Assembly (NCBI GenBank): GCA_964247055.1 | Contig: OZ176050.1 | Location: 5,890,001 to 5,954,000, forward strand | Direction: 5' to 3' | Origin: Paragordius varius | Lineage: Eukaryota > Animalia > Nematomorpha | Length of the DNA: 64,000 bases | Part shown: piece after piece, positions 503 to 56,582 of the stretch | How the letters are laid out: each line of letters opens with the position of its first letter | How positions within the stretch are numbered: position 1 is the first letter of the stretch | Program-made: the position numbers and the translations under genes | The notes under the pieces: generated by a model | What the model saw: only the letters and a program-made list of their open reading frames with translations | The model's database searches: none | Told to the model about the DNA's origin: nothing

Positions 503-2191
503 ACTATATAAATAAATTATTTTTACGAATAATTGTTATTTTATTGTATAAAAAACGATCATCTTAAATTTTACTTTATACAAATAATATACTTTTTTAT
601 TTAAAATCAATAATTTTTATCCATGTTTAACATTTTTTCATTTAAAAAACTTTTTAAATTAAGGATGGAATATTTGAAACCTATAATATTTATTCAAATC
701 ACTTTTATTAGTTTGATATGATTTTTGCATTATAAAAATGTGTGTATGAAAATTTAAAGAAATATAAAATTTTTATTATATAATACAATTTGTGCCCAAT
801 TGTTATCAAATATTACGGCTAAAGTATTAGAGAGCTGAAGGAATTTAACGTTTTGAGATTCTCAAACAATTTTTGTATAGTCATCCAAAAATGTTAATTT
901 TCTAAAAGTATATGAAGAAATGAACAAAATAAACAGGCTTTCGAATCTGAAACCCAATTCTTAATATTTTTGCAAAAATCAACCCGTGTCGGTTTCAACC
1001 GTTCAGAAACCGCTACCGTTCCGGCTACACAAGGTAGTTTAAAATAAAAAAGTTATTGTCCACTTCGTTCCCTTTTTGACCTGATTATTTAAAAGACAGA
1101 ACCAATTCCTCAAAAATGCGGTTGCTTATGCCGTTACGCATATAGTCGAAGGATGCATTAAAATTTCAAGAAAAAAATATGGCTCGCTATTATTTATTGA
1201 TACAAACGCATTAAAGGATACTGTTCATAATTTTAAAATTATTAAAAAAATATAATATTTAGTCTTTATTTCATTAAGCAAACTTACATTTATTCCCCAT
1301 CAGTCAATATATCCAAAAAGTGAAGAAACTACTCATTGATTATAATTTGGCCAACATTACAATGGCCTTACCAACTCAAGTTTTTTTTTAATACAGAGCA
1401 TATATATTTTCAGATTGGAATTAGTTTGACCACTATCCAATCTTAAGGCACGATAAGGATTTTTAATAAATATGATAAATGATATAAATAAACATCATTG
1501 CCTTTGTACTTTTTTCACCATGCATTTAGTCATTATATCTTTTCCAATAAATTGTATTTGACTGAAATTAGTTGATATCAAAGGTTTTTATATTAAAAGT
1601 TTTATACAGAAACCAATATAGGAACCGTTTCTAAATGTCAATTACTGGTTCATTCACTAAAAATATAATAAAAAATTATTTGGCCAGTAATGGGCTCTAA
1701 AATAAGTAAAAAAAAAATTACAAAGTGAGATTATAGATTAGAACATAAATATAGAATTATAAATTATTATTGTTATGTTCGCATTGAATTTATGTAAAGT
1801 TTTGGGCTCTGTTATAAAAAATTACAGTATGACATCTATGCGCCTTTTTCACATTGGTCAATTGATAACACAGTAGCGTGTGTTCTTAAACAATTTTTGT
1901 CCATAATTAAAGAAACAAAAGGAAAAAACTGTTCACTACTGTCCAGTGGCCAACAATAAATGGATCAGAAAAAATGCGCATACTATAACTTTCTCGATAT
2001 CTTATTAGAAGATAATTGAGTTTAAAGTTTTGATGATTTTAAGAAATAAAATATGAAATCGAAGAAATAATGTTAGGAGGGATAAATTTACGGTATATAT
2101 ATAACGTCATATTCAAGAATAAATCAATCATTAAGAAAGGTGTTAACTTGCTTACAAAGTCCTACCATTAATCCTTGTTAAGTACAAGAAA

Positions 2192-3365
2192 TCTATATAT
2201 TTATAAAAATGGAAAATGCTGGCTTTGTGATCTGGTACCGGAAAACCGGTAGACCCATTCATATCCAAACATCGAAAAAATATAATCATTAACGAATGCC
2301 CCGACAATAGCTTCGCCCTTTTTTGAAATATGCCCCCAGTTCGGGCCCACCCCGTGTGAAAAACGGGTTGAGACAATTTTCTGGCGAACGTGTTGGACCA
2401 TTCAATTTCAAATATGATTTTTGTTTACTTATTTTTGATCGCGCCGAACATAGTCGACTCACTTTTTTGATTTAGGCCCTCTTTTTACCGCTACCCCCGC
2501 AAAATGCCATTTTTTTCAAAAAAAACAAAGTCCACAAAAATAATTTTTTGATTGTATTTTTTTGCCCAAGGTATGAGACTGTAAAAATTTAATAAGGATT
2601 TTTCGTATTCCCTGGTAAAAGGCAAAAATTTTAGTCAAGCGTTTCTTTGATGATAGCTGCTGAGTAAGGAGTATCTATCATATGCATAGGATGTTAAAAA
2701 ATATATGGATAATAAAACATTATTTATGGTAATCTATATATTTATAAAAATGGAAAATGCTGGCCTTGTGATCTGGTACCGGAAAACCGGTAGACCCATT
2801 CATATCCAAACATCGAAAAAATATAATCATTAACGAATGCCCCGACAATAGCTTCGCCCTTTTTTGAAATAGGCCACCAGTTCGGGCCCACTCCGTGTGA
2901 AAAACGGGTTGAGACCACTTTCTGGAGAACGTGTTGGATCATTCAATTTCAAATATGATTTTTGCTTACTTATTTTCGAATGCGCCGAACATAGTCGTCT
3001 CGCTTTTTTGATTTAGTCCCTCTTTTTACCCGCTGCCCCCGGGTTTTTTTTCAAAAGTCCACAAAAATCGTGTCTTTGAGACTTGTTTCTGGAGAACGTT
3101 TTGGATCATTTAATTTACAATATGATTTGTGTTTACTTATTTTCGATTGCGCCGAACATAGTCGTCTCGCTTTTTTAATTTAGTCCCTCTTTTTACCCGC
3201 TCCCCCCGTAAAATTCCATTTTTAAAAAAAGCCCACAAAAATAATTTTTTAAATCTATTTTTCTCCCAATTAAACAATATATTAGTATGAATACACCGTT
3301 TTAAAATTCCTATAAAATCACATCTATTAAATAATATTTCGAAATAATCCACATATGTGGATCAT
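2192..3365 (+). mobile_element. Non-autonomous Helitron (family A), composite, 3'-truncated
   Basis: A|TCTATATATTTATAAAAATGG 5' end at 2192, repeated at 2733. Body matches the copies at 21969-23905, 43195-44905 and 55615-56503. The 3' hairpin/CTAG end is missing here. Confidence 0.75.
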
Positions 3366-13801: not shown

Positions 13802-16800
13802 ATGGGAGTCTTTGTTTCAGTTGCCCGGCCTGACGATCCTTTATCAAATGATGACGATGAAATATATTTAAATGCCCCATTTCCTGGAAACAAAAATCAA
13901 AGTTATAACTTTACATATATTTTAAATAATTTTTTGGTCCTGAATTAAATATTTTTCCCATACCATAACATTGTAAAAACTATACTCCAAATTTTGAAAA
14001 AATAGTTTAATCTTTTATAAATCAAAGTAATATTACAACTCTTATTGGAGCCCTGGCAAATATTTTTATGTGGAACTTGATTAAATGTTTGGTAAGAATT
14101 AGCGATTCAAATTATACCCAATATTTTTAATTTAAGCTATCTAAAACAACTAAAATTATCAAATAATTTTAATATTAAAAATATATTTGCGATAGGTGTT
14201 ATTTTATCAAGAGATACAGTTAATTTATGGACTTAATAAATATGGTAATGTAAAAACATTATCATACCGTCATTTACAATTAAAAATTTTTTTTGTTTAT
14301 TTTAATCCACCGCTAAACTTTCTACAGCTCATGGAGTGAAAAATGTAATAATAGGTTAACTTACATTCATTTAAGCATATCTTGAATGCATAATAAGATA
14401 TTTACTTGAAACCTCTGCCATCAATATTGGAGGTAGCTTTTAGTTGAGTAATTATGTGAACGACACGGATCTAAACTCGACTTTTATTGTAAATGATATA
14501 AGTATAAAGTTTACTTTTTTTTCATATGGGTAATAAATTACAATTAAGATCGGAATGTCTTAATGACATACCAAAGTGATGAATCCTATAGGTGTCCAGT
14601 AACAAATGCTAACAACTGCACAAACTAGATAAAATGAACAATAACCATTACAAAAACGCCCTTTGAAAAAATTGGTATTTTGCCGACATCAATTTAGATA
14701 ACTATGTAAGATTTATTTCTAACACCTTATAACTATAAAATCAATGATTTAAAAAAGAAAAATATAACTCCAGATTCGGAATAAAATCTAAATAAAAAGG
14801 AAGACGAAACGCCAACATATCGACCATGAACAAAATTAAACCTATTCTTTATTCTTCAAAATTTCGGCGACTAAAGCCTCTTTTCTGCCACTTCATAATT
14901 ACTAAAAATAATATTCGTAAGGTTTACGGGATTTATTAGCTTCTCTGTGACCCAATAAATTATGGTTTTGGTATATTTTTTGCGATTGGTATTAATTTTG
15001 AGTTGTTTCTAAATCACATAACCAATATTAGAAGTCAATAAATTTTAGCTAATACCTCTTCCTTTAATTAAATCATATTTATTAATTAGAAATTCAAAAT
15101 GGAACCAGCGGATACCAAAAGAAATCTGTCGGTAAAACCGGAAAATTGAATGAAATGGGAATAGTATCGTCTACTGAGCATAAAATTTATTTGTCACTTG
15201 CCAATAGACGAAGTTTTATTTTTAAATATAATTTTAATTTTCAGATATTTTATTATTTTTGGCTAAAAAGCCCATTAGCCACAGAATCAAAAATTAAAGT
15301 CACTTGGGGTATAAAGTCTGATTTTACACATTGTTTATAGTGAATATAAATTTTTTTCTTTATGAATAATAAACATAAGAATAAATAATGTGTATAGATG
15401 ATAAATATAATAATATGATTCAATAAGCTTTACTTTCAAAAGTGAAACATTTAAACTTCCAAAACTGCGTTTTTGATAAATATAGAATTTTGATGGTTAA
15501 TAATTAAATATGATATAAATAAACATGTTGTAGCGTTTTTTATCGTTAGTCTTAGAACCATATCCTTTGAGTAATTTAATGTGGTGCTATGAACTGGGGA
15601 AAATATAATTAATTATTTTGAAATATCAAACTAAATAAATTAATATTTCGCTGGATACTTTACCGCAAAAAAGTATAAAATAAAGCAAGTTAAAATATAT
15701 GATTTTTTATAACGGCAATGTGCAATAGAATTATATAAAACCACAAAATATGAAAATTATTACCATTTAATATATGTATAAAACTTTACCGCTATAAAGA
15801 ATTTTATTGTAAAAAATGGAATTAGATGCTCTTCCAAGGACCTAAGATATAGACGTAATAAAATTTAATGTATTTTATCTATTTGCAACCAGTCAAAAAT
15901 ATTTATAAATATATAAATTTTGTCAGACAGTATTGTTAAAAATCTTTTCCGACTAAAATGCTACACAACGCTCAGTTTGTTTTCTGAAAGCCGTTGGTTT
16001 TATTTAAAAAATACTGAAAAACATACTATATTTTATAATTATACAAATTTTTATATATCATTTTATAATAGAAAACATTCAAACACTTTCTCACGAAACA
16101 GGTTTCGCGAAAAATGAGCTGAGATTATATTATCGAGCATTCAAACAGGTGTATGTACATTCTAAATTTATAGATATGCCCGTCTGGCTATATGACATTT
16201 AATCATTTCCGCGAAATTTTTAAATTGATATTCCCCGAACAAAGTATATAAATTTTTTTGAGAAAGATCTATTTTGGCAGGGATTTATTCTGTCATTTAT
16301 TATAATTTGGTAGGAAAAATTATTCAAGTCATTATTAAAACGGTCAAAAATAGGATGCTATTGGTTATTTAAATAATTTATATAAAAGAATTAGTTGTTA
16401 CTTATTTAATAGGTAGAACGCCTTCATTGATAAAATGACGAAAGGTTGAACCTTTTATTTATATTAAGTTGTGTCATGTCGTTCGTTGGACAAGAAAACG
16501 TGCTTTTCCAAATTAACACATAAATTATTTATTTAATTTGTTGTGCGCATCTTTCATGCAAATGCAAATTATATTATTATAATATTTATAATAAATTAGA
16601 TTCTTATCAATATGCCTACTACATTTTTCAAAGCTTTGATCAAAATGGTTACGGATTTTTAACTTTTGAAGTATAATAACGTTGTATCCTTAAAGCTAAA
16701 TATATTTATATTATATATATATATTACTTACTTTATAAATTAAAGTTTCATCATTTCCCACATATCTGGTTCTTTGTAGGATTACATTATGAATTTGTCC

Positions 16801-18037
16801 GTAATAAGCAAAGGAACATACATGGACAAATTAAATTGGATTTTTGATTTATATGACATTGACAGAGATGGTAAAATTGGTGAAAGGGATTTCAGAAATC
16901 TCGTCTTATCCATTTTTGAATTGCAACTGAATGTTAGGGATGAACCTCAAACGGTTCACAAAACACACTCTACGACGACACACACGCTGAAAACTCCACT
17001 AATTTTGAGTTATTCGTTAGCTGAATCAAATAAAAAACCGTACTATAAATTGGATGATATTTTAGTCAAAGTACAATCATTATATAAAGTAATACTTTAA
17101 TATATCGTATTACCGTAATTAAATTGAAAAATAGCACATAAATTAATAATATATATAATTTTATACAATAATTCAAAAAATATTTTACAAGTGTTTTCAC
17201 CAGAATTTAAATTTGGTAAAGATACGAATTATATGTATCATAAATGACTTGAATTAAAAAACCTCATTAAATTAAAACGTTTAACTAACATGGCCCCACC
17301 CTTTATCTTGTCCTATAATTATACAAAATCGCAAATACATTAAAAGTTTGGGATGTAAAATATTTCATTGCATATTTGATATTTTTTTAAAAAATTGTCG
17401 CTGCAATGGTCATTAGTAAATATAGCTAAAATATTTTTATTATAGAATATAAATTTAACAGTTTTTATTGTTTTTCGAAATCGTCAGTTGGTTAGCATTT
17501 ATAGTAAAAAAAATTAACTGAAATCATACGGACAAAACGTAATAATATAAAGACAAATATTTTTTTCTAAAAGACAACCATACTTTTTAAATCTTGATTA
17601 AAAATATAACACATTGTTTAAAATGACAAAATGTAAAATAGATATATGTAACTAACACAATGAATTTTATATTTTACAATTGTAATTAAATAGCTAATAT
17701 GGGAAATATTAAGGTTTAAGAAGTATGGTTGTCTTTTCAATAAAAACATTTGTCGTGATATTTTTACGTTTTGTCCGTATAATTTCAGTTTTTATTGTAA
17801 TTACAATTTTTATGTATTATTTTAAAATTAAAATTTGTATAAATGGTTATATATAGTCTTTTTGCTTTTATCTATTAGAATTTCGCCGATAATCAACAAT
17901 ATTTGACCCGCAATCAATTTTTTCAGGTGGCTCGAAAGGTATATTTTTTTAATTTTTATAATTAATGTTTACAATATATTGCATAATTATAGTTGAACAT
18001 AGAAAGCAAACTTTCCAGCATTGAATCGTTTTTTTGA
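13802..18037 (+). CDS. Neuronal calcium sensor / KChIP (calsenilin)-like EF-hand protein. Core exons 16111-18037 are firm; N-terminal exons (13802, 15089) are tentative.
   Basis: GFAKNELRLYYRAFKQ|ICPSGYMTFNHFREIFKLIFPEQ|..YAYYIFQSFDQNGYGFLTFE|DYIMNLSVISKGTYMDKLNWIFDLYDIDRDGKI follows the KChIP/NCS pattern (FTKKELQSLYRGFK, CPTG, AFD.DG.G.I.FEDF, KLKWAFNLYDINKDG). Stop TGA 18035-18037. Candidate first exon MGVFVS... at 13802. Confidence 0.75.
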
Positions 18038-19868
18038 CATGACCAAATTTTTTATCACATTATATTAAATAAACTTTTTATTAAAATACATGTATTTGAT
18101 CCGATTTCTGCGATAAATTAAAAAGTTTAAATAAAAGCTTTCTCCTAGGTCCATCCATTATTTTCTCGGTCGTTCTAATGTGAACACATGAGCGGGTTTT
18201 CGCAGTATGATATAGCTTTAAAAAAGTTTTTGCAGGTTATTGCACATATATGATTTTTTAATTTTAAAAATCATTATGGTTTATGCCGGTTACAATAACT
18301 TAGAAAAATATAAAACTCATATTTAACGGTTATATTACAAAAAAGACCTTATCTTTAAATCAAGAATATGCATGATAATTTCATATTATTCTTTTATCTT
18401 TAATAAGTAGCAGAAAAGCGGACGCATCTAAGTTGGTAAAAAATGGCAAAATGGTATAAAATTAATTTTGAGCAAATGATTTCCGAAAAAATCAAAATGC
18501 GAATCATTCCAAACTTTAACAACTGTCATTTCAATGATCTTACAAAACTTACAATAAGAGAGTTAAATAAATAATGGCTAACGGGGCATATGATATAAAT
18601 ATAGAGTTCTGGAAACTGTGGGTGGGATATTTGAAAAGTTATTAAACCAAACAAACATATGAAAGGTATTATCGAGCGAACGGGAGATTTTATAAGATGC
18701 ATATTTTAAAAATAAAGTGGGGTTAAAAGAATGTAATAATTACATGGGCATTGCAAGGGCCATACCTGATCGTTAAATGTTATTAAGGATTTAAAAATTA
18801 GTAAGTATATAAGTATCATTTTGTTATCCCAGAAAACTAGGTTATGTTTAATAGAAGTCTTAAAATTGTATCTTTAAGACAATTTTCTGGAAAACGTGTA
18901 GGTCCATAGAAATTCGAATAATTTTTACGAATGGGTTGAACACAAATCAACCAGTTTTAACTGAGACTATAAATATATTTAGATGCTCCTTCGTTAAAAT
19001 TGCAAAAAATAAATCCAATCTATATTTGGCACAAGTAATCAGGTTTAATAATAAATAGTAGTCCCTGTATGAAGGCAACAATTTTAGCCTAGTGTTTTTT
19101 AATTAGCTTTTGGCTCCTCACCCTCTATAACACCATATAAAGATAACGTGATTTTGAAGCCTATTTTCGCCAAAGTTATAGGAGCATATGAATTCAATAA
19201 TGGTTTTGATATCACGCATAAAAATTGTAGTTAAAGCTCCTTTTTAATCAAATGGTTGTTTTTTCCAGTTTAAAGGCAAAATGTTGGTGAGGTTTTTAAT
19301 GAGTCCATGGTTAGGGCACACCTTTAAATATACCACCATATAATTATTACATGACTGCGTACTTCTATAATGACACTAAATTAAATGGCTAATTAGAAAT
19401 CATGTGGGAGGCAAATGATATTTCAATCTATCTATTCTACGATACTTGCAAACAATATAGGATTAGGAATTTCTATTAGCATCATTTTTTCAGCTTGCTT
19501 ATGTCATCAATGTCATTTTAAATTGAAACGATCAACATTTTGCAATTATGAGTTTGCCGGACCGATACATTCAATTGTATAAAAGAATAATATGTATTTA
19601 TTTAATATAAAATACTAAATAATGTGTGTGACTCTTTAATTGTTTTGTATATCAGAAAATATTTGAAGTAAAATTTAACAAAGAATAATCTACAATTTTA
19701 ATTGTTAATAAGGATATATTTCATTGATTATGTGCAATGTTTTGATGATAGTAAAAAAATATAAAATACTTAAAAATGATGATACGAGCAAGAAGAGATC
19801 TTAAATCAAACAATTGAGCATTTAACAATAAGGAGAGTGGAAATATATAACGTATTAAAAAATATTAT

Positions 19869-22800
19869 TCAATTGAGATCTATTAATCGCATATTGCTTT
19901 GTTTGAGATCTGAAAGAGAACCCTCTACCAAACAACTGAGTTCTTGGAAATGAATTAGCAATCTATTCCACAAGGGTTGTGTTGCTAACACCTCCCCATT
20001 CCCAATTATGATTAACCCAAACCTTAGATTTTGTGAAAATAATAAAACAATGCAAAAGTTTATTTAATAAATGATATCAGGTTTATAAGTTTCCCTATTT
20101 AAATGATAACATTAAATATTTAACAAATAATTTAATTTACTTTGCCCGCGTTAATGATACATTTAAACGGCGTGGATCGCTCAAAAATCCGATTTCGCAT
20201 TTTTCATTTGATCTGACACACGACAATATTATGTAATCCTTTTCTCGTCCTTGAAACGTGTCCACATTAGCAATTTCTATGCCCTTTAAACGTATGATAG
20301 AGAGCGAATCACATATGATATAATACATTTACGCAATTAGTATCAGTATAATGATATTAATATACTTGATAAAGTTTGGTCCCCTTTTTACTACGGATAT
20401 GATTGACAATGTATTCGCGCTGCCCTTCATAAGGCGTAATGACCCCAATTTGATCGGGTTTAATACCAGATGATAGAAGTTTAGTGATGGCTTCTTCCAC
20501 ATTTTTCGCCTCAATCTGGTTCATAAAGGTCGTAGCATGACGTTTCTTTTCTTGTCCATTTGTTGTGAGGAATATCATGGGACATTTTGGGTTAGGCCAC
20601 AGGGATTGGACAGATTCTTGCTTTCTATCATCTTAAAAATATTAATTTTCTTGATTAACAAACAAAGAAACAATATAAAAATACACCTAATTTAAACCAA
20701 TCTTTACAGGTAATTCAGTTTACCTTCCAACACCCCATTGTTAAGCATGCCTTTGTAAAACTCATTTGAAGGAAATAAAGCTAGACTAGGATGCATTCGA
20801 TATTGCACATCAAGACAGGTAGGTAGTTTTCCTAAACGCAACAATCTTTCAAACAAGGGTAAATTTAATCCTGATTTACTACTTCGGGGGCACATAACCA
20901 CAGGTCCCAGTTGGCATTGATCACCAACCAAAATAACCTAGAACGCAGTTAAAAACGCATTATATCATTGAGTAAGACAAAAAATGATGATAAAGTGGTG
21001 TCCCCACTTGTTTTATGTCAGAAAAATTTGCGATGGGGATAAGCGTTTCGGGCTCAGTGGCTTGTGTTGCTTCATCGATTATCAATGCATCTATTTTCTG
21101 TTCTTTAAACATGTAACTACCGGCCCCAATACACGTGGTACAAATAACATTAGCACCTTCTAGAACTTTCTGTTCATAGTTGTGTAGTAAAGCAATGTAT
21201 ATTCGATTTTGTTCGGAGGTTAAACAGTCACCGTTTATTTTCATGCGGTGTAGTTCCTTTGAATAAAAAAACATTATTTTTTAAGTAATAAATCAATTCT
21301 AATGTACCAATTTCTTAATCGATCATAGTTCGTATATAGCTGTTTAAAGCATATAGATGTGCTAAACATATTTGGATTTAATATTGCACATAGTTTGAAA
21401 ATTATTTTATTAGCCTACCATCGCAATTAGAAGTCATAGTACTTCCTATCGAGCAATAAATGGCTGCATGAAACGAAATTTTTAAGATTCGGATTTAATT
21501 TTATTTTAAAAGTGTAAAAGCAAATTACATATTACATGTTGGTTAATTTAGATTGTATGTTTACGTTAAATTTTTGGAAAAACTGCCAATAAAAGACCCA
21601 GCATGTTTATGGTAATAGTGCATAAAGTAAATAAATGTGATGCTCTTAATAATTGTGGTATGTAATATACCTTAAACAAATCGTTACTAATTTGGTTGAC
21701 TAAAATGTGAAGCGATATGGAGGAGAGAGGCGATTCCAAAGTCTGTCTATTCCTGGACATAACCCTAACAACGTTTAAACCTAAATCTTTGATCTTTAAA
21801 GCCAAATTATCAACTGCATTGTTACTGGCACCACAAACCAATACGCGTTTCTGCATTTTTACCAGGTAATACACAATAGTGGCTGACGTGACTGTTTTTC
21901 CAGTTCCTGGTGGTCCCTGTACAATAAATACATTTTTAAGCAAAGTTTACTTGCCTGAATAAATAAAACCTATATATTTATAAAAATGAAAAATGCTGGC
22001 TTTGTGATCTGTTTCCGGAAAATCGGTAGACCCATTCAAATCCAAATATCGAAAAAATTAATCATTAATGAATGCCCCGACAATAGCTTCGCCTTTTTGG
22101 GCCCCTAGTTCTGGCCTACCCCGTTTAAAAAACGGGTTTTTTGAAAACAAAAGTCCACAAAAATCGAATCTTTGAGACAATTTTCCGGAAAACGTGTTGG
22201 ACCATTCGATTTTAAATATGATTTTTTACTTATTTTCGATTGCGCCGAACATAGTCGGCCCGCTTTTTTAATTTAGGCCCTCTTTTTACCCGCTCCCCCC
22301 GTAAAAAGCCATTTTTTCAAAAAAATTAAGTCCGCAACAATAATTTTTTGAATCTATTTTTCGCCCAAGGTATGAGACCGTAAAAATTCAATTAGGATTC
22401 CAGATATTCCCTGTTAAAAGGCAAAAATTTTAGTCAAGCGTTTCTTTGATGATAGCTGCTGGGTAAGGAGCTACCTGCGAAAAACTGACCCGTCTTATCC
22501 AGGACAATGAGTTTAATAGCTGCTTAAAACATTACCCGTAACAAGGCAAATATTGAGATCATGCGGTTTTTTAAAATTAGCCATTAATTATGCCCTTCCC
22601 GCCCTGAAAAATGCGCCACCATAGAATAATTTTTTAATTTTGAGGCAACTTTACCGAAAACTAAAGGGAGCATATGGAATTAATCATGATTCCACGTATT
22701 CTCCGTAAAAAGGCAAAATTTTAATCAAGCGCCTTTTTTGTATCAGCCTCTGGGTAGGGAGCTACCCGTCTACAACTGCGCCACCATAACAAAATTGCGT

Positions 22801-25800
22801 TGTTTAGGAGATAATTTTCAGAAAATTTATCAGGCCATATAAGTTATTATAAGGCCCTAGAATATTACCCATAAAAAGGCAAAAATTTAAGTAAAGCGGT
22901 TTTAAATTAGCGGTTAAATAGGCTCTAGGTAGGGGGCTACCCGCGTAAAAATACGTGACTATATCGGTACAGCATGCCTTTGGAGCCAAATTTCAGAAAA
23001 CTTATGAGACTATGTGAGTTCAATAAGGGCTTAAAATTTTTTAATATAGGGGATTATTTCAATGAGTCGCTAAGAAAAGTTTTACCCCCTTAAAAATCGC
23101 ACCATAGAACAATTTTTTGGTTTTGAAGCAATATTTCCAAGAAAACATATGGACATTATAATTCCAGATAATCCCCATATAAATACAAAAATTTTGCCCG
23201 ACGCTTTTTTATGCCTGCCTCTGGGTAAGAAGCTACCCGCCAAAAACTGTGCCACTATATAGAAATTGCGTTGTTTTGGAGCTAATTTACAGAAAATTTA
23301 TAAGATATGAGCCCATTAAAAGCTTGAAAAATTACCCGGTAAAAATAAGGTCGGGCGATTTTCATAGCCGTTTATTTGGGGCCTTTATGTCCTAAAAATA
23401 CACCATCATATAACGATTATTTACTGTTGAGGTATTTTTTCGAATAACCCATGAGACGATGGTCTCAAAGATAATTCCAAATATTTTCCCTATAAAGGCA
23501 AAAAATTCTAGCGCTTTTTCGATATAGGCCTATCGGTAGGGGTCTACCGGTTTAAAACTGAGATGCCATACAAAAATGGCATGGCTTTGGAGCTAATTTT
23601 CAAAAAATTTAAAGCCATACGAGTTTAATAAAGGCTTTAAATATTACCCATAAAAAGGTAAAAATTATAGTATAGCGGTTTTTCCCGTTAGCCGCCAATT
23701 TGGGGCCTTTACACCAGTAAACAATATATTAGTATGAATGCACCGTTTTGAAAATCTTATGAGTTCATAGCTATTAAATGTTTCGAAATAATCCACATAT
23801 GTGGATTATTTTTTGTCCCTTTTTTCAAATAGCCCCCCCCCCCCCCCCCCCCCAGAAGTCCAAAGGACATCCTCGGGTCGCGTAGCAGCACGAGATTTAC
23901 GCTAGTAATATAATAGATATGTTTTTTGTTAGGGTTATTCGAAACAAGAAACATACATTTAACAAAATGTTTAAAACCAATTTATCGATAGATTGATGGA
24001 TAAAAATAACCACATTATAAAAGGGCAAAAATGTTAAATTAAATGTGAACAAGATACATTTTAGCGAGCATCAATTTTAAAAAATAATTTATCTAATATA
24101 ATAATATCGGTTATCAAAATTTGTTTCAAATAGTGTACCTGAAACTTTTTGATTAAAACTTGAATAATGTTTTAAACTATATGGAATTTGGAATCGAATT
24201 GGATAATATGATATTTAAATAAATCTATTAATTAAAACATATTTATATTATATAATACGACGGATAAGGTATATAAATATGATATCTCGATTAGCCAACT
24301 ACTACCCTACCTGGATTAGGGTAAATGGCTGTTTAATTGCCTTCATAACAGCATTGTGTTGAGATTCGTTTAAATTTGGTAAAAGAGAATTGGTGATTTT
24401 TTTAACCGGTATAGTGGTAACCCTTCCCCCGCCGGAACAATTGCCAATTATGTGTTGAAAGATGTCGTTGCACATGACAAAACGTGAGAGACCCTTTAGT
24501 GCTGCTTTCATTCTAGATTCAAGTTTATGGAATATAAATAATATATGTTTTGTGTATCTAATTAATCATGAAAAATATAAATTAACAACCAAGTTAAAAA
24601 AAATCATAAAGCATAGCGAAGCATAATTAGGCACGAACGTATAATGAATTTTTAAACATACATTTTTTGTGCAACGGTTTATATTTTAAATAAAATATTA
24701 ATAAAATTATGTTAGCCGAAATAGTTGTATATGTTAAAAAAAATATTTCCCACTTTTATATATATCCGGGATTGAGACAGCTTCCAAATCTAAAAAAACG
24801 CTTATTATTTAAATGAATAATTAACAAAATTTGCTGCACATTATAATTAAGGCATAAAATATAATTAACATGTTCGTTTAATTAGCGGTTTATTAAAAAT
24901 CCAAGACGGCCAAAAGTTCGAAAGAATTTATTGACATTTATATTGATAATATTGGATAATGTGCTTTAACGCTAAAGGCTATTTTAACTTGGCCTTATAA
25001 CATATCTAGTATCTGTGATATAATATCGCTTTGGGGTATAACAACCACCAAATGATTATAAAGTGATAAATCAATTCTGAAAATGTTTGATTGAACACAC
25101 TATGTTTTTAGAGACGAATTAGGTATTAATTACATCGTGTCTCCACCTTTTTAAGCAACTCTGGAAATTAAAAAATGATATCGGACAAAATTTCAGAGAA
25201 AATATTACATGGTAATAAAAGAACAAGTATATTTTTAAATAAATTACATTCCATACAGTAGCAAAAAATAAAACCATGATCGGATTATGAAACTGTATAC
25301 TTTCAAACAAAAGACTTTAGTTAAATTTACACTAAATCATTTTAAGTCTTCCTAAAACCGTGACTTATTGTTACTTGTAACAATTTAAGACATATACTGT
25401 GAGATATAATAAACCCATCGCTTAATATTACCTATCATGTGATGTAGAATTCCATTCAAATTGTACAGTAAATCCAGAAATAGGATATATTGGCGGAATG
25501 AATTTTTGAACAAACCCCAAAAAATCAACAACCATTTCTCCTTTAGAATTAGGCAACTCTACTATTTTTCCTTGAAACTTGACTTCTTTCGATGACCATA
25601 ATTTCTTTTTATTGTGTTTATCTAATAAAATATACTATTGGACACAAAAAACTGTGAATTTTCAATATTAAACTATTTTGCCGATAAATTTCTATTTTTA
25701 ACAAAACGGACAGCATTTAAGCTAGTTAGTCACATATTATAATGTGGGAACGGATCATTTTTAAAAAACGCAAAATTAAATGCACTACCGTTTATTAAAA

Positions 25801-28800
25801 ATATTTATAAAATTATTAAACATTTAATTTTCAATATTTAACATCAGGGGTTAACAAAAGATGTGGTTGTTTTAATATCTAGTAGATAATTGTATTTTCA
25901 AAGATTTAAAGAAGCAATAACAATATATTATCGGTAGTTAGATCGTTAGATATAAGATAAAATGGCAATATAAATTCATTCTAAAACACAAAAAATGTTT
26001 GTACTTGTATTGGGTAAAAAGCCCATGGATAAAGTATTGGAGATATTCATTATATCGCCTTCCATTAATTTCAATTCTATATTGATAATGTGAAAATATA
26101 TTTTGCACACCATACTGCCCTCTCATAAACTTTAAGAACCAAACTAATATATATATATATAACAAACTAAGAAAGTTTTTAAAAAGTTTTTCAACCCATC
26201 AGAACGGACCGGTTAAATTTTAAACAAAATAATTGTCTACGTTTAAACCAGGGATGTCCAACACAATTGGCTTCATGAACCGCATTTTCGGATCAAAAAA
26301 TCGGGGGGGGGGGGGGGGGGGGGGCGTATTCCCAAAATATATGGGCATTAACGAATATTTTATTAGAAGTCAAACCTAAGACTGTAAAAACTACTATTTA
26401 TTTTAGCATTTTTTGGCAGTTCATTGTCAGTAAAAGATATATCCAGAAAATTTGTTAAAGAAAATCAATCTTACTTAGATTTCGTAAAATTTTGCATTTG
26501 AAATTTCTCGCAGCAGAAATATTTTGGAGGGCCGCGTGTTGGCCACCCCTGGTTTGACATAATAATATAATGGCTAAAAAATAAGTATAAAAAATTCATT
26601 AAATGTGCATTTGGATTTAAACGCTTGTAGATATACATAAAAAATGGTAAATACTTGATATAGTTTTGGGAAAAATGATGGTAAACCTTTTGTGCGTTGT
26701 CCATATTATAGTTATGTTTGTGAAAATTGGTGTCTCTATCGCCTTTTTATTATAATCAGCATCCCATCTAATAGGGTTGATTAAAAAGTAAAAAAAGTTG
26801 TACTCTAAGAAATTATTAAATGTTTAAATATACAATGTATAACTAAATAAAGTTTTAAACATAAATACATCAAGAAATTAAAATATACCGAAACATATAT
26901 TTTGAAAAGATATTTTTTTAAATCTCACACCCAAAGATAACAATTGAGTAAAATATGATTGAGTGATACCATCATTTTTTTACTTTGCAACATAAAACGC
27001 TATTTTTTATTTAAAAAACCAAGATTAAAAAAAAGAATGTTTTTTTCAAAAAAACATTGGTCTTTTAGTTTTTACGTTTTATCTTTATAATTTCAGTTTT
27101 ACTGTATTTTATTTTGCCCAGAATTAAATTTGGATATTATTGGGTTGGAATTGGTTGAAAAAATTACAGATACCCTTTAATCAGTGACATCTAACGTGAA
27201 AGTCGTAAAAGGGAATGCGTAAAAAAATACATTTTCTTTTTACATATGCTGGAATTATTTGATTTCACAATAGAAAATTACCTTTTTAAAACCATTTAAA
27301 GGAAGAAGAACCCAAAAATAATTTAAATTATGACATAGTGGCTATCGATTTTGAGGGGGCGTAACAAAAGAATGAAATTACAAAAATTAAAATCATAGAG
27401 AATGTCGTTATTGACCGATGCTGAAATATTGACAATGCGAATAAATGTGTTTATTAAACCCAAAAAAGATATTAACTATATTTTTCGAATCCATATAATC
27501 GGGTTAATTAAAAAAAACGGCCATTCTTTAAAATAAATTATAATTAGTAAAAAGTCCAAACTCGATAAGTTGTAAAAATTTATCAGTGTATTCCTTTTCA
27601 TTTTCGTATCTTATTTTGCTTTTGAATTGCGCTTGATCTCTAACTGCCTGTTTTTTTCTCTCAATAATTTCATTCTAAAGAAATGTATATGTAAATTTTT
27701 ATCGTACATTCATTATTTAGAGTTAATATTATAAATATTAAGGGAATACTTTCAATAACTTTTCAATTTCTGTCATTTTTTGAGCCGTGACAAGTCTCAG
27801 GGGCGGTATTTTACAAAATTTCGGATGTATGCCTCCCTTAGAAATCAATGATTCCCATTTTTTACGATCCCTATAAGAAAAATTGTATTATCAAATAAAA
27901 TAAACCATTTTTTATCCCATTTGCAATTTTCAGGCGCTGGTTTGCATACGACAGGGTAAATATTTTTGCAATTGTAGGGTAAAAATCCTAACTCAAAAAC
28001 ATTTTTTGATGCACAGTTGCAACATTTTAACGGTATAATCGCTTTACTGCCCGATATCCCTACAGAGACATGATTGGCCCGTACTAAGTGATTGATGATA
28101 TGGCTAAAAGGATACATACGTTGATACATTATAAAAATTCCATGTTTAAAAGTGACTTAATTTCAAATAATATTTTAGTTTTATTAAAAAAAAGTTTCAC
28201 AAACATGGTGAAAATCGCATATTTGTAATATAGATTTTTAATTTATGCAACACAATAATAAGTTATGATTTTTTTCAAATTACAGATTATAGATATGCTT
28301 AACTAACGTGTACAAAACAAATAATTCATAATCAAAATAATTGTTAATTTAATTTTAATTTAAAAATTAAACCTTGTAGTTCCGCCCCCATTACAAAACC
28401 ATTTCTCACATACCGTACAAAATACAAGGGAATCCCGATCGTCTATAAGACAATAACTATGCAGTGTGAGTAAAAATATATTGGTAATTTTTCATTTAGC
28501 ATTTACAGTTCAATAAATCGAAATAAGCCAATTCACAAAATCAATTATATATTTAAATAATAAAATCATGTAACATTTTAGAAAATTTCACAAGCGATTT
28601 TTGCTGGCAAGAAGTTTAGATGATCCTTATTAGTCTTTTTTGAAAAGGATTTTTGAGGCACAAAAATAAATGGAAACCATATTTTATAATAAGATTCACA
28701 GTCAGGATTGTTTTTTATTAAATTCCATGTTGGTCTCTGGAAAACTAACTTAAAATGTTAAATATTTTAGAAAACAGATTTGCAAATCATATACGCCAGT

Positions 28801-29303
28801 TCGGAGATATATAAAATGCAATTATAATTGAAATATTTAAGCAATTAAAAGATTATAATTTTAGGCGAGATATGACTTGTAAAAATAGGTAGAATAACTC
28901 TTTTCCTCTTGTTAATTACTGAATATATAAAATCAAAAAATGGCTGGCAAAAACTTAAAACGGATTCACAATAAAATCTTTATCATAAAGGTCATAGGAA
29001 CTCATATTATCATAGTTTTCATAAAGAATACTAATCTAATCAAACGAAAATATTGGGTGCAAAACTAAAAATATTTAAAAAATTAATTAAATATATTCGT
29101 ATAAAATCTAATAAATATAATTTTTAACAATTTTTTCGGGTAATAATTGAAAATATTCTATACCTGCATTTAGATGTTTCGGCAGCAGATTTATCCAACT
29201 TCAATTTTCGAAAAGCATTTGTTAGAGATTCGTCTTCATTTAATTTGGTATTTTCAATATCATCATTTAATTTATTGTTCGTATTCATGATTGCTCCCAT
29301 CAT
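19869..29303 (-). CDS. UPF1-like: Divergent UPF1 paralog (SF1B helicase with CH zinc domain), ~834 aa. Exons 29303-29164, 28456-28373, 28103-27906, 27870-27750, 27674-27562, 26767-26655, 26076-26005, 25621-25432, 24512-24311, 21916-21671, 21256-21008, 20937-20724, 20631-20366, 20283-20141, 20022-19869.
   Basis: All 14 introns are GT-AG with consistent phases, giving 2505 nt with no internal stop by hand. Motifs: CSYC...CTVCEKWFC...[12 protein letters not shown] (CH domain), [53 protein letters not shown]. Confidence 0.9.
21969..23905 (+). mobile_element. Non-autonomous Helitron (family A), full length, in intron 9 of the UPF1 paralog
   Basis: 5' (T>C)CTATATATTTATAAAAATG; degenerate internal subrepeats; 3' poly-C, hairpin region, then CTAG followed by T at 23902-23906. 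Confidence 0.8.
26249..26551. mobile_element. hAT (Buster-type) MITE with internal poly-G, in intron 6 of the UPF1 paralog
   Basis: Ends CAGGGATGTCCAACAC / GTGTTGGCCACCCCTG; flanks gtttaaac / gtttgaca resemble a decayed 8-bp TSD. Related copies at 36988 and 61286. Confidence 0.7.
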
Positions 29304-40637: not shown

Positions 40638-52821
<12,184 letters not shown>

Positions 52822-56000: not shown

Positions 56001-56582
56001 AGTGTAACGCAGTTTTGGCGTCCTTACCCGGCAGCCAAAATTAAAAAACGCAAGACTATAAAATTATTGCCTTTTAACAGAGAATAACTCTAAACCTTAG
56101 TGAATTTTAACAGTCTCATATCCTGGGCAAAAAACTATTTACTTTTTAAAAAAAATGGCATTTTATGGGGGAACGAGTAAAACGAGAGCCCAAATTAAAA
56201 AAGTAAGCCGACTAGGTTCGGCGCAATCGAAAAAAAAGTAAAAATAATCATTATTGAAATCAAATAGTCCAACACGTTTTCCGGAAATTTGTCTCAAAGA
56301 CATGATTTTTCTGGACCGTTTTTCAAAAAAACCCGTTTTTACAGGGGGTGAACCCGAACTGGGAGCCTAATTCAAAAAAGGGCGAAGCTATTTCGGGGCA
56401 TCCATTAATGATTATATTTTTTTGGCATTTAAATTTGAATGAGTCTACCGTTTTCGGAAACAGTTCACAAAGCCAGCATTTTCCGTTTATACAAATATAT
56501 AGACTATAATGATTGGAATGGAAATGCTGGTATAAACAGTCTTTCCGAAACAGAAGATTTTATGATATATTTAATTTTACAA
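53050..56582 (+). CDS. Tentative 5' exons of the P5B ATPase (53050-53065, 53730-53771, 56503-56582)
   Basis: Phase-compatible GT-AG exons giving MDGIC|DVNPYLKPRASKSK|YYNDWNGNAG...LILQ|VWLPKD. No homology support; ATG would be divergent from the UPF1 ATG 229 bp away. Confidence 0.3.
53161..53476 (+). mobile_element. TTAA MITE, deleted copy
   Basis: (T)ACTTGGATACAAC start and GGAGTG|TTAA end; body similar to 34417-34987. Confidence 0.5.
54392..54861 (-). mobile_element. TTAA MITE (piggyBac-like), inverse copy of 34417-34987
   Basis: TTAA|CACTTCGAT...TGTCCAAGTG|TTAA; reverse complement aligns along the 34.4-35.0 kb copy. Confidence 0.65.
55615..56503 (-). mobile_element. Non-autonomous Helitron (family A), inverse orientation, 3'-truncated
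   Basis: Minus strand TCTATATATTTGTATAAACGGAAAATGCTGGC at 56503; body is the reverse complement of 21969-23650. Confidence 0.75.

Follow-up and report, generated by a model that had tools for sequence, protein, structure and literature searches.

A 64,000-nucleotide stretch of the genome of the hairworm Paragordius varius (assembly GCA_964247055.1, contig OZ176050.1, positions 5,890,001–5,954,000; hereafter the window, whose first letter is position 1) carries two UPF1-like genes head-to-tail on the minus strand, a canonical copy (52821–40638) and a divergent paralog (29303–19869) that lies about 11 kb further downstream. We propose, with a probability of roughly 0.6, that position 19869 marks where the paralog genuinely ends, and that the gene is a functional tandem duplicate of UPF1 which has evolved fast and encodes an 834-amino acid ‘core-only’ UPF1. 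In this architecture a short N-terminus of 47 amino acids would be followed by a cysteine/histidine-rich (CH) zinc-knuckle domain, then by divergent inserts 1B and 1C and by the two RecA domains, with the stop codon immediately after. Animals usually have one UPF1 gene, and the disordered termini of the protein, which the paralog appears largely to have shed, are the meeting point of phosphorylation by SMG1, docking of SMG5/6/7 and autoinhibition of the helicase.

The window is AT-rich (24–36% GC) and its genes are intron-bearing and of animal type. For the gene models, all frame-keeping GT..AG pairs between adjacent open pieces were enumerated and the choice among them was made by homology between the two UPF1 copies. 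Database searches were run per exon, and the joined models were used only for alignment, counts of serine/threonine-glutamine (S/T-Q) motifs, the comparison of nonsynonymous and synonymous divergence (dN/dS) and trees. The resulting model of the paralog has 15 exons in a single uninterrupted frame of 2505 nucleotides, giving 834 amino acids and ending at a TGA (19871–19869), and the model of canonical UPF1 has 20 exons and 1297 amino acids.

The last codon of the paralog is AAT, for Asn (19874–19872, minus strand), and the TGA that follows it stands 16 residues past the conserved LVEG motif. In our alignment all 12 of 12 full-length UPF1 representatives have between 96 and 316 residues after LVEG, as opposed to these 16. 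The last exon (exon 15, 20022–19869 including the TGA) encodes the end of RecA2 and is 59% identical to residues 1–46 of the homologous canonical exon (43043–42861, minus strand), which is the last helicase exon of that copy. Residues 1–45 of this paralog exon align to residues 754–798 of 2wjv, a crystal construct of human UPF1 with 800 residues, and also to the ends of yeast NAM7 cores; thus the encoded protein is predicted to end where the structured core ends. The canonical gene continues beyond this point for about 360 amino acids, in three tail exons (42267–42134, 41950–41328 and 41097–40943) and an optional fourth (40758–40638), all on the minus strand, and this is the part without a counterpart in the paralog.

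At the other end of the protein, the paralog has 46–47 amino acids before the first Cys pair of the CH domain, with an in-frame TAA directly upstream of the ATG at 29303, and this segment contains no Gln and no S/T-Q motif. It is about half as long as the canonical N-terminus and is without the acidic patch and the ‘ELPxHAC’ motif that lie upstream of the canonical CH domain. When the two copies are aligned, ‘LSLTQSM’ of the canonical protein faces ‘ESLTNAF’ of the paralog, so that one ancestral N-terminal TQ appears to have been replaced by TN. The whole paralog holds three S/T-Q motifs, ESQH394, ATQA557 (in helicase motif II) and ATQP798, all of them in folded domains. Two features that typify SMG1-regulated UPF1 are a disordered C-terminal extension with S/T-Q motifs and an N-terminal S/T-Q that serves as docking site for SMG6, and the paralog has neither. 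Since both the C-terminal extension and all terminal S/T-Q are absent, neither SMG1 nor another S/T-Q-directed kinase of the phosphatidylinositol 3-kinase-related (PIKK) family would find a substrate motif in the termini of the paralog. An earlier reading of the same DNA, made from the letters alone (the sequence-only reading), had placed the stop directly after the helicase core and had described the N-terminus as free of SQ and TQ, and both statements are borne out, the former by codon reading together with the structural alignments. Its further statement that both S/T-Q tails were lost holds for the C-terminal extension and for every terminal S/T-Q, but has to be amended for the N-terminus, which is shortened and altered rather than deleted.

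The canonical copy has seven terminal S/T-Q motifs, two in the N-terminus (CSQL27 and LTQS67) and five in the tail (PTQQ1081, SSQQ1091, ESQD1225, TTQD1258 and ATQK1270). The seven motifs and a tail of over 300 amino acids had been listed in the sequence-only reading and all are present, TTQD1258 and ATQK1270 by way of the optional final exon, without which the frame ends in ...ARTTT. The 3′ end of the canonical gene is ambiguous in this respect (40638–40943, minus strand), as the frame may either stop at ...ANNARTTT(TGA), right at a GTGAAT donor, or pass over a 184-nucleotide intron into a last exon that ends in VGHV. Support was not found for the idea that the canonical termini serve as tails for S/T-Q phosphorylation: on shuffling, the two N-terminal motifs compare with 0.79 expected (p 0.17) and the five in the tail with 3.2 expected (p 0.21), counts no higher than chance. 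The tails of other UPF1 representatives carry between 0 and 14 S/T-Q. According to Causier et al. (2017; PMC5709506), the occurrence of terminal S/T-Q clusters across eukaryotes follows that of SMG1, and among the animals examined there is none from which the whole SMG1 complex is missing. It is thus plausible that the canonical copy depends on SMG1.

The remainder of the paralog is that of a UPF1 protein. Exon 1 (29303–29164; all exons of both genes are on the minus strand) carries the N-terminus and ends in the first Cys of the CxxC pair, and exons 2–5 (28456–28373, 28103–27906, 27870–27750 and 27674–27562) encode the CH zinc-knuckle domain and a linker. A scan of 28102–27908 matches PF09416 (UPF1_Zn_bind) with an E value of 1.6e-10 and 41.6 bits against a cut-off of 25, and the domain aligns to the human CH structures PDB 2iyk and 2wjv. 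It keeps 9 of the 10 invariant Cys/His residues, the tenth being a His changed to Ser, and is about 30% identical to the canonical CH domain. In the alignment the Phe of ‘NVF’ is retained, while ‘LECY’ is replaced by ‘LKCC’ and ‘VV’ by ‘IY’. The positions of ‘LECY’ and ‘VV’ have been reported to contribute to UPF2 binding in human UPF1, and as they are changed here it is uncertain whether the paralog would bind UPF2. Exons 6–8 (26767–26655, 26076–26005 and 25621–25432) form the divergent 1B/1C region and are homologous by alignment to canonical exons 7–9. The Pfam scan of this stretch covered exon 8, which returned no match to any family, UPF1_1B_dom included. The end of domain 1C and the stalk fall in exon 9 (24512–24311), which was placed by enumeration of junctions that keep the frame continuous and is followed by a repeat-filled intron of 2394 nucleotides.

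Five exons of the helicase core match PF13086 (AAA_11) or PF13087 (AAA_12) above cut-off. Exon 10 (21916–21671) contains Walker A, GPPGTGKT, and matches AAA_11 (E 3.4e-15), as does exon 11 (21256–21008; E 9.6e-18). The three that follow match AAA_12: exon 12 (20937–20724) with the QYRMHP motif, exon 13 (20631–20366; E 1.7e-14) in RecA2, which served as the query for homologue searches, and exon 14 (20283–20141; E 4.8e-22), which holds helicase motifs V and VI and is 83% identical to its canonical homologue. The ATPase and helicase motifs are intact throughout, from Walker A and motif II (DEATQ) to motifs III, V and VI, and the paralog keeps 180 of 227 columns that are near-invariant among 13 canonical-type UPF1s from fungi to animals. 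Exons 1–15 of the canonical gene (52821–43044) encode its N-terminus, CH domain and helicase core.

That this frame is in use is indicated by the variation found within it. Variants were taken from contigs that diverge by about 1–2% from the reference and stem from other individuals, or from very close relatives; the runs that contain the locus are genomic, since their contigs cover introns and intergenic DNA. Among the exonic differences listed for 19869–21916, 15 of 16 are synonymous (five in exon 10, five in exon 11, two in exon 12 and three in exon 14) and one, in exon 11, is non-synonymous, as compared with about 21% synonymous expected under neutrality (binomial probability about 1e-9 by hand calculation). 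We see no reason why the differences listed should be biased towards synonymous ones. Among the variants listed, five indels fall in the gene body, and all five are in introns, which make up 38% of its span. The 15:1 ratio and the confinement of indels to introns constitute strong evidence, at the level of sequence, that the modelled reading frame is translated and under constraint.

Judged by its domain content and nearest relatives, the paralog is a member of the UPF1 (RENT1/SMG-2/Nam7) subfamily of superfamily 1 (SF1) helicases. Its closest relatives are UPF1 proteins and not MOV10, SMUBP2, SETX, HELZ or ZNFX1; PDB matches of its exons are to UPF1/NAM7 only, with the last exon scoring best against NAM7 cores, and its named matches in protein libraries are to UPF1 or ‘regulator of nonsense transcripts 1’. 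A word search of these libraries with exon 13 returned three generic UPF1 fragments of 51–53% identity, and an exhaustive HMMER search with the same exon returned 756 matches, which did not exceed 55% identity and were in every case more similar to the canonical copy. In neither search was any protein nearer to the paralog than generic UPF1, at 50–55% identity. The absence of an orthologue from the libraries is uninformative, because in a control search the homologous canonical exon likewise found nothing above 74% identity there, so that close relatives of this genome are not represented. The sequences closest to the canonical copy in the protein collection come from metagenome eukaryote contigs in ENA (ERZ25069296 and ERZ19566080), which hold one compact UPF1 each with a RecA2 exon 72–74% identical to it.

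The two copies are 45% identical, with a proportion of synonymous differences (pS) of 0.775, at which synonymous sites are saturated, and a dN of 0.50. An attempt to date the duplication from synonymous divergence (dS) was dropped on account of this saturation, and we therefore give no date. All 14 introns of the paralog lie at positions homologous to canonical introns, including one that splits a Trp codon after the CH domain, which argues for a tandem duplication at the DNA level and not for retroposition. In trees the canonical copy is placed among animal UPF1s (Hymenolepis, Trichinella and a fish), and the terminal branch of the paralog, at 2.5–2.9 substitutions per site, is about seven times longer than that of the canonical copy at 0.36. 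Free trees placed the paralog with sequence P0021 of grape phylloxera and then with P0123, and both placements were rejected as long-branch artefacts. A tree that holds the paralog as sister of its own canonical copy lies 11.65 log-likelihood units above the free quick tree, with a p value of 0.80 in the approximately unbiased test (p-AU). This constrained tree, the tandem position and the shared introns together favour an old duplication inside this lineage that was followed by strongly asymmetric evolution.

We hypothesise that the paralog protein is an active 5′–3′ RNA helicase that could still be gated via its CH domain. It would have lost the disordered C-terminal region that in canonical UPF1 restrains the helicase and, when phosphorylated, docks SMG5/SMG7, and also the N-terminal TQ that docks SMG6. 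The C-terminal SQ region of human UPF1 also inhibits the helicase, and for this reason a tail-less copy may be regulated through the CH domain only. Such a protein would stand apart from the cycle of SMG1 phosphorylation. Its role would most likely be a sub- or neo-functionalised one in RNA remodelling or decay rather than that of the main effector of nonsense-mediated decay (NMD), in line with what was found for Upf1b of Tetrahymena. The sequence-only reading had also set the paralog outside phospho-dependent recruitment; an intact gene under purifying selection and without terminal S/T-Q agrees with this, and the part of the argument that took the canonical copy to have an S/T-Q tail goes unsupported.

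A different explanation for the early stop is that a tail exists and was missed, with transcripts that splice from or around the last helicase exon into distant tail exons or many micro-exons. This genome does use micro-introns of 24–35 nucleotides as well as introns of several kb, in the canonical gene an intron follows only about nine codons past the position of the paralog stop, and the 3′ end of the paralog was read from DNA contigs only. Against this, there is no GT within the 40 nucleotides that precede the stop, which rules out its removal by a micro-intron. All GT/GC donors of the last exon were also combined with each AG over the 3.9 kb downstream, and no single splice added more than 55 amino acids of AT-rich junk or any S/T-Q. 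Searches by tblastn with each of the canonical tail exons found no homologue, apart from the last helicase exon, in 15000–20200 or anywhere in window positions 1–40000. ATTAAA signals, at 19702, 19640 and 19606, lie 167–265 nucleotides downstream of the stop and the next downstream gene is convergent, on the plus strand, and ends at 17100, which leaves about 2.7 kb of room for a missed tail exon; all in all we consider a hidden tail improbable. More improbable still, and the least probable of the explanations considered, is that the paralog is a decaying or unexpressed pseudogene in which a premature stop merely truncates the protein. The identity of 45% to the neighbouring copy, the changes at near-invariant positions and the runs guessed to be RNA, discussed below, would be in keeping with decay, but 15 exons without a frame disruption, usable splice sites throughout and a full set of catalytic motifs would not, and the excess of synonymous differences with purely intronic indels is incompatible with neutral decay.

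A further alternative concerns what the contrast between the copies means and is compatible with the core-only reading, namely that it has no bearing on SMG1, as the canonical termini would not be SMG1-regulated clusters either and loss of the tail would alter helicase autoinhibition, localisation or condensate behaviour. In C. elegans, which as a nematode belongs to the sister phylum of hairworms, phosphorylation of SMG-2 needs smg-1, and this speaks for SMG1 regulation in the canonical copy; so does the consideration that few sites can suffice for function. On the other side stand the chance-level S/T-Q counts of the canonical termini and the wide range of counts in other UPF1 tails. In other lineages S/T-Q-poor termini accompany ancient loss of SMG1, but no animal has been reported to be without the whole SMG1 complex (PMC5709506). 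We regard this alternative as a real possibility, though one that falls well short of even odds. Rather less likely is the proposal of the sequence-only reading that the paralog acts as a competitive antagonist of NMD in the manner of UPF3A, binding UPF2, release factors or target messenger ribonucleoproteins through its CH domain and core without recruiting decay factors, and so damping NMD. The near-complete set of invariant Cys/His in the CH domain, the intact core and the absence of terminal S/T-Q would suit such a role, and the tandem arrangement with the canonical gene means that co-regulation could occur. However, the low identity of the CH domain and its substitutions at the putative UPF2-binding positions do not suit it, the sevenfold longer branch suggests changed function rather than simple mimicry, and Upf1b of Tetrahymena bound no NMD factor.

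Several points weigh against the reading of the gene as a functional core-only UPF1. The enumeration of splices covered single splices, and a tail of several tiny exons separated by micro-introns, as this genome uses, falls outside it. The paralog is changed at 47 of the 227 near-invariant UPF1 positions, including two Trp, several Arg, the ‘GDPR’ loop and one His of the CH domain, and some conserved partner interfaces may be lost as a result; its helicase activity, moreover, is something that we infer. Another 111 variants lie outside the differences listed. In a word search, the runs of the same species label that were guessed to be RNA contained next to none of the paralog words, and the expression of the paralog, its poly(A) site and its lack of alternative 3′ exons are predictions from DNA. 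Lastly, because the terminal S/T-Q counts of the canonical copy are not above chance, the difference between the two copies may be largely unrelated to SMG1.

Comparison with known systems places the paralog near several proteins and identical with none. It shares with canonical UPF1/SMG-2/Nam7 the CH zinc-knuckle domain and an SF1 core with all motifs, and with its canonical neighbour the 14 intron positions, but differs in its 45% identity to that neighbour, in the absence of the extension of about 360 amino acids and in its halved, Gln-less N-terminus. Yeast Upf1/Nam7, whose partners are Dcp2, Nmd4 and Ebs1, is the sole, essential NMD copy and has about 120 residues after the core, unlike the paralog. 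The similarity is that it functions in NMD with neither an S/T-Q-rich tail nor SMG1 (PMC5709506). The antagonistic vertebrate NMD paralogs UPF3A and UPF3B likewise represent the duplication of a core NMD factor, with an effector-recruiting element missing from one of the two (cited in PMC5709506), but they belong to another protein family with another mechanism, and the likeness to the UPF1 pair is an analogy only.

The nearest parallel in print is Upf1b of the ciliate Tetrahymena thermophila, a second and more divergent UPF1 beside a conserved one, without an S/T-Q-rich C-terminus. Experiments showed that NMD does not require it and that it binds none of the known NMD factors (Tian et al., 2017; PMC5499736). 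The duplication in Tetrahymena is an independent one, however, and as both of its copies are without an S/T-Q tail there is no asymmetry of the kind seen here. Among animals, multi-copy proteins of 660–689 amino acids annotated as ‘regulator of nonsense transcripts 1 homolog/-like’ in the grape phylloxera (Daktulosphaira vitifoliae), for example XP_050524410.1, are divergent UPF1 paralogs that also end at the helicase core, with phylloxera residue 659 of 660 aligning to residue 830 of 834 in the hairworm paralog. They differ in that there are at least seven copies, which are helicase-only, have no UPF1_Zn_bind or 1B match and are known from automatic annotation alone. That they group with the paralog in the tree reflects a meeting of long branches and is not evidence of kinship. 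The UPF1-derived phylloxera copies (P0021 and P0161–P0166), which measure 428–689 amino acids when all are counted, are spread over several scaffolds, a pattern suggestive of an expansion of tail-less UPF1-like genes that has so far gone undescribed in this insect. A full-text literature search turned up no account of an animal UPF1 paralog, and what comes closest is Tetrahymena Upf1b and these phylloxera copies, the latter not themselves described in print.

A number of other features of the two genes and their surroundings were observed. Introns 1 and 2 of the canonical gene are GT-AG micro-introns of 24 nucleotides (52636–52659) and 25 nucleotides (52483–52507) on the minus strand. A 35-nucleotide intron of the paralog (27871–27905), the one that splits the Trp codon after the CH domain, occupies the site of a canonical intron of 291 nucleotides, and a 707-nucleotide intron of the paralog that of the canonical 25-nucleotide intron; as homologous introns differ in size between the copies, the size class of an intron is not bound to its position. 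The canonical protein has two lineage-specific low-complexity inserts, one of about 23 amino acids right after Walker A and one of about 35 amino acids in domain 1B (47891–48208 and 49260–49497, minus strand), and the paralog is without both. Very high-copy dispersed repeats lie at 17522–17895, 18831–19017 and 21823–21999, and also at 22000–23300, 43200–44400, 2155–3012 and 56166–56500, and a related repeat family occupies the long introns of both UPF1 copies. In DNA runs the summed contig depth over the dispersed repeats reaches 10^5–10^6, with many joints that connect 17.5–17.8 kb with 21970. The convergent gene downstream of the paralog has an exon at 16780–17100 (plus strand) that, by reading of its translation only, encodes an EF-hand of neuronal-calcium-sensor type.

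Ciliates, including Tetrahymena, also have very short introns. One could imagine that the hairworm lineage split UPF1 in two, into a tailed canonical copy and a conserved core-only helicase that runs a separate surveillance or RNA-remodelling pathway independent of SMG1 and phosphorylation, one candidate role being to police retention of the unusual micro-introns of 22–35 nucleotides in this genome or its abundant transposon transcripts, in parallel with ciliates, where tiny introns and two UPF1 genes co-occur. We offer this as a long shot. On the sequence, the paralog is real, conserved by selection and architecturally distinctive. The SMG1 premise is partly shaky, and the practical value of the finding hinges on RNA evidence and on whether other genomes of hairworm type share the copy. 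A duplicate that is kept under purifying selection with its CH domain and motor, and that has shed both termini, amounts to a natural separation-of-function allele. It could reveal the role that the UPF1 core plays in vivo without the phosphorylation cycle, and could show whether the NMD-independent roles of UPF1 can pass to a dedicated gene.

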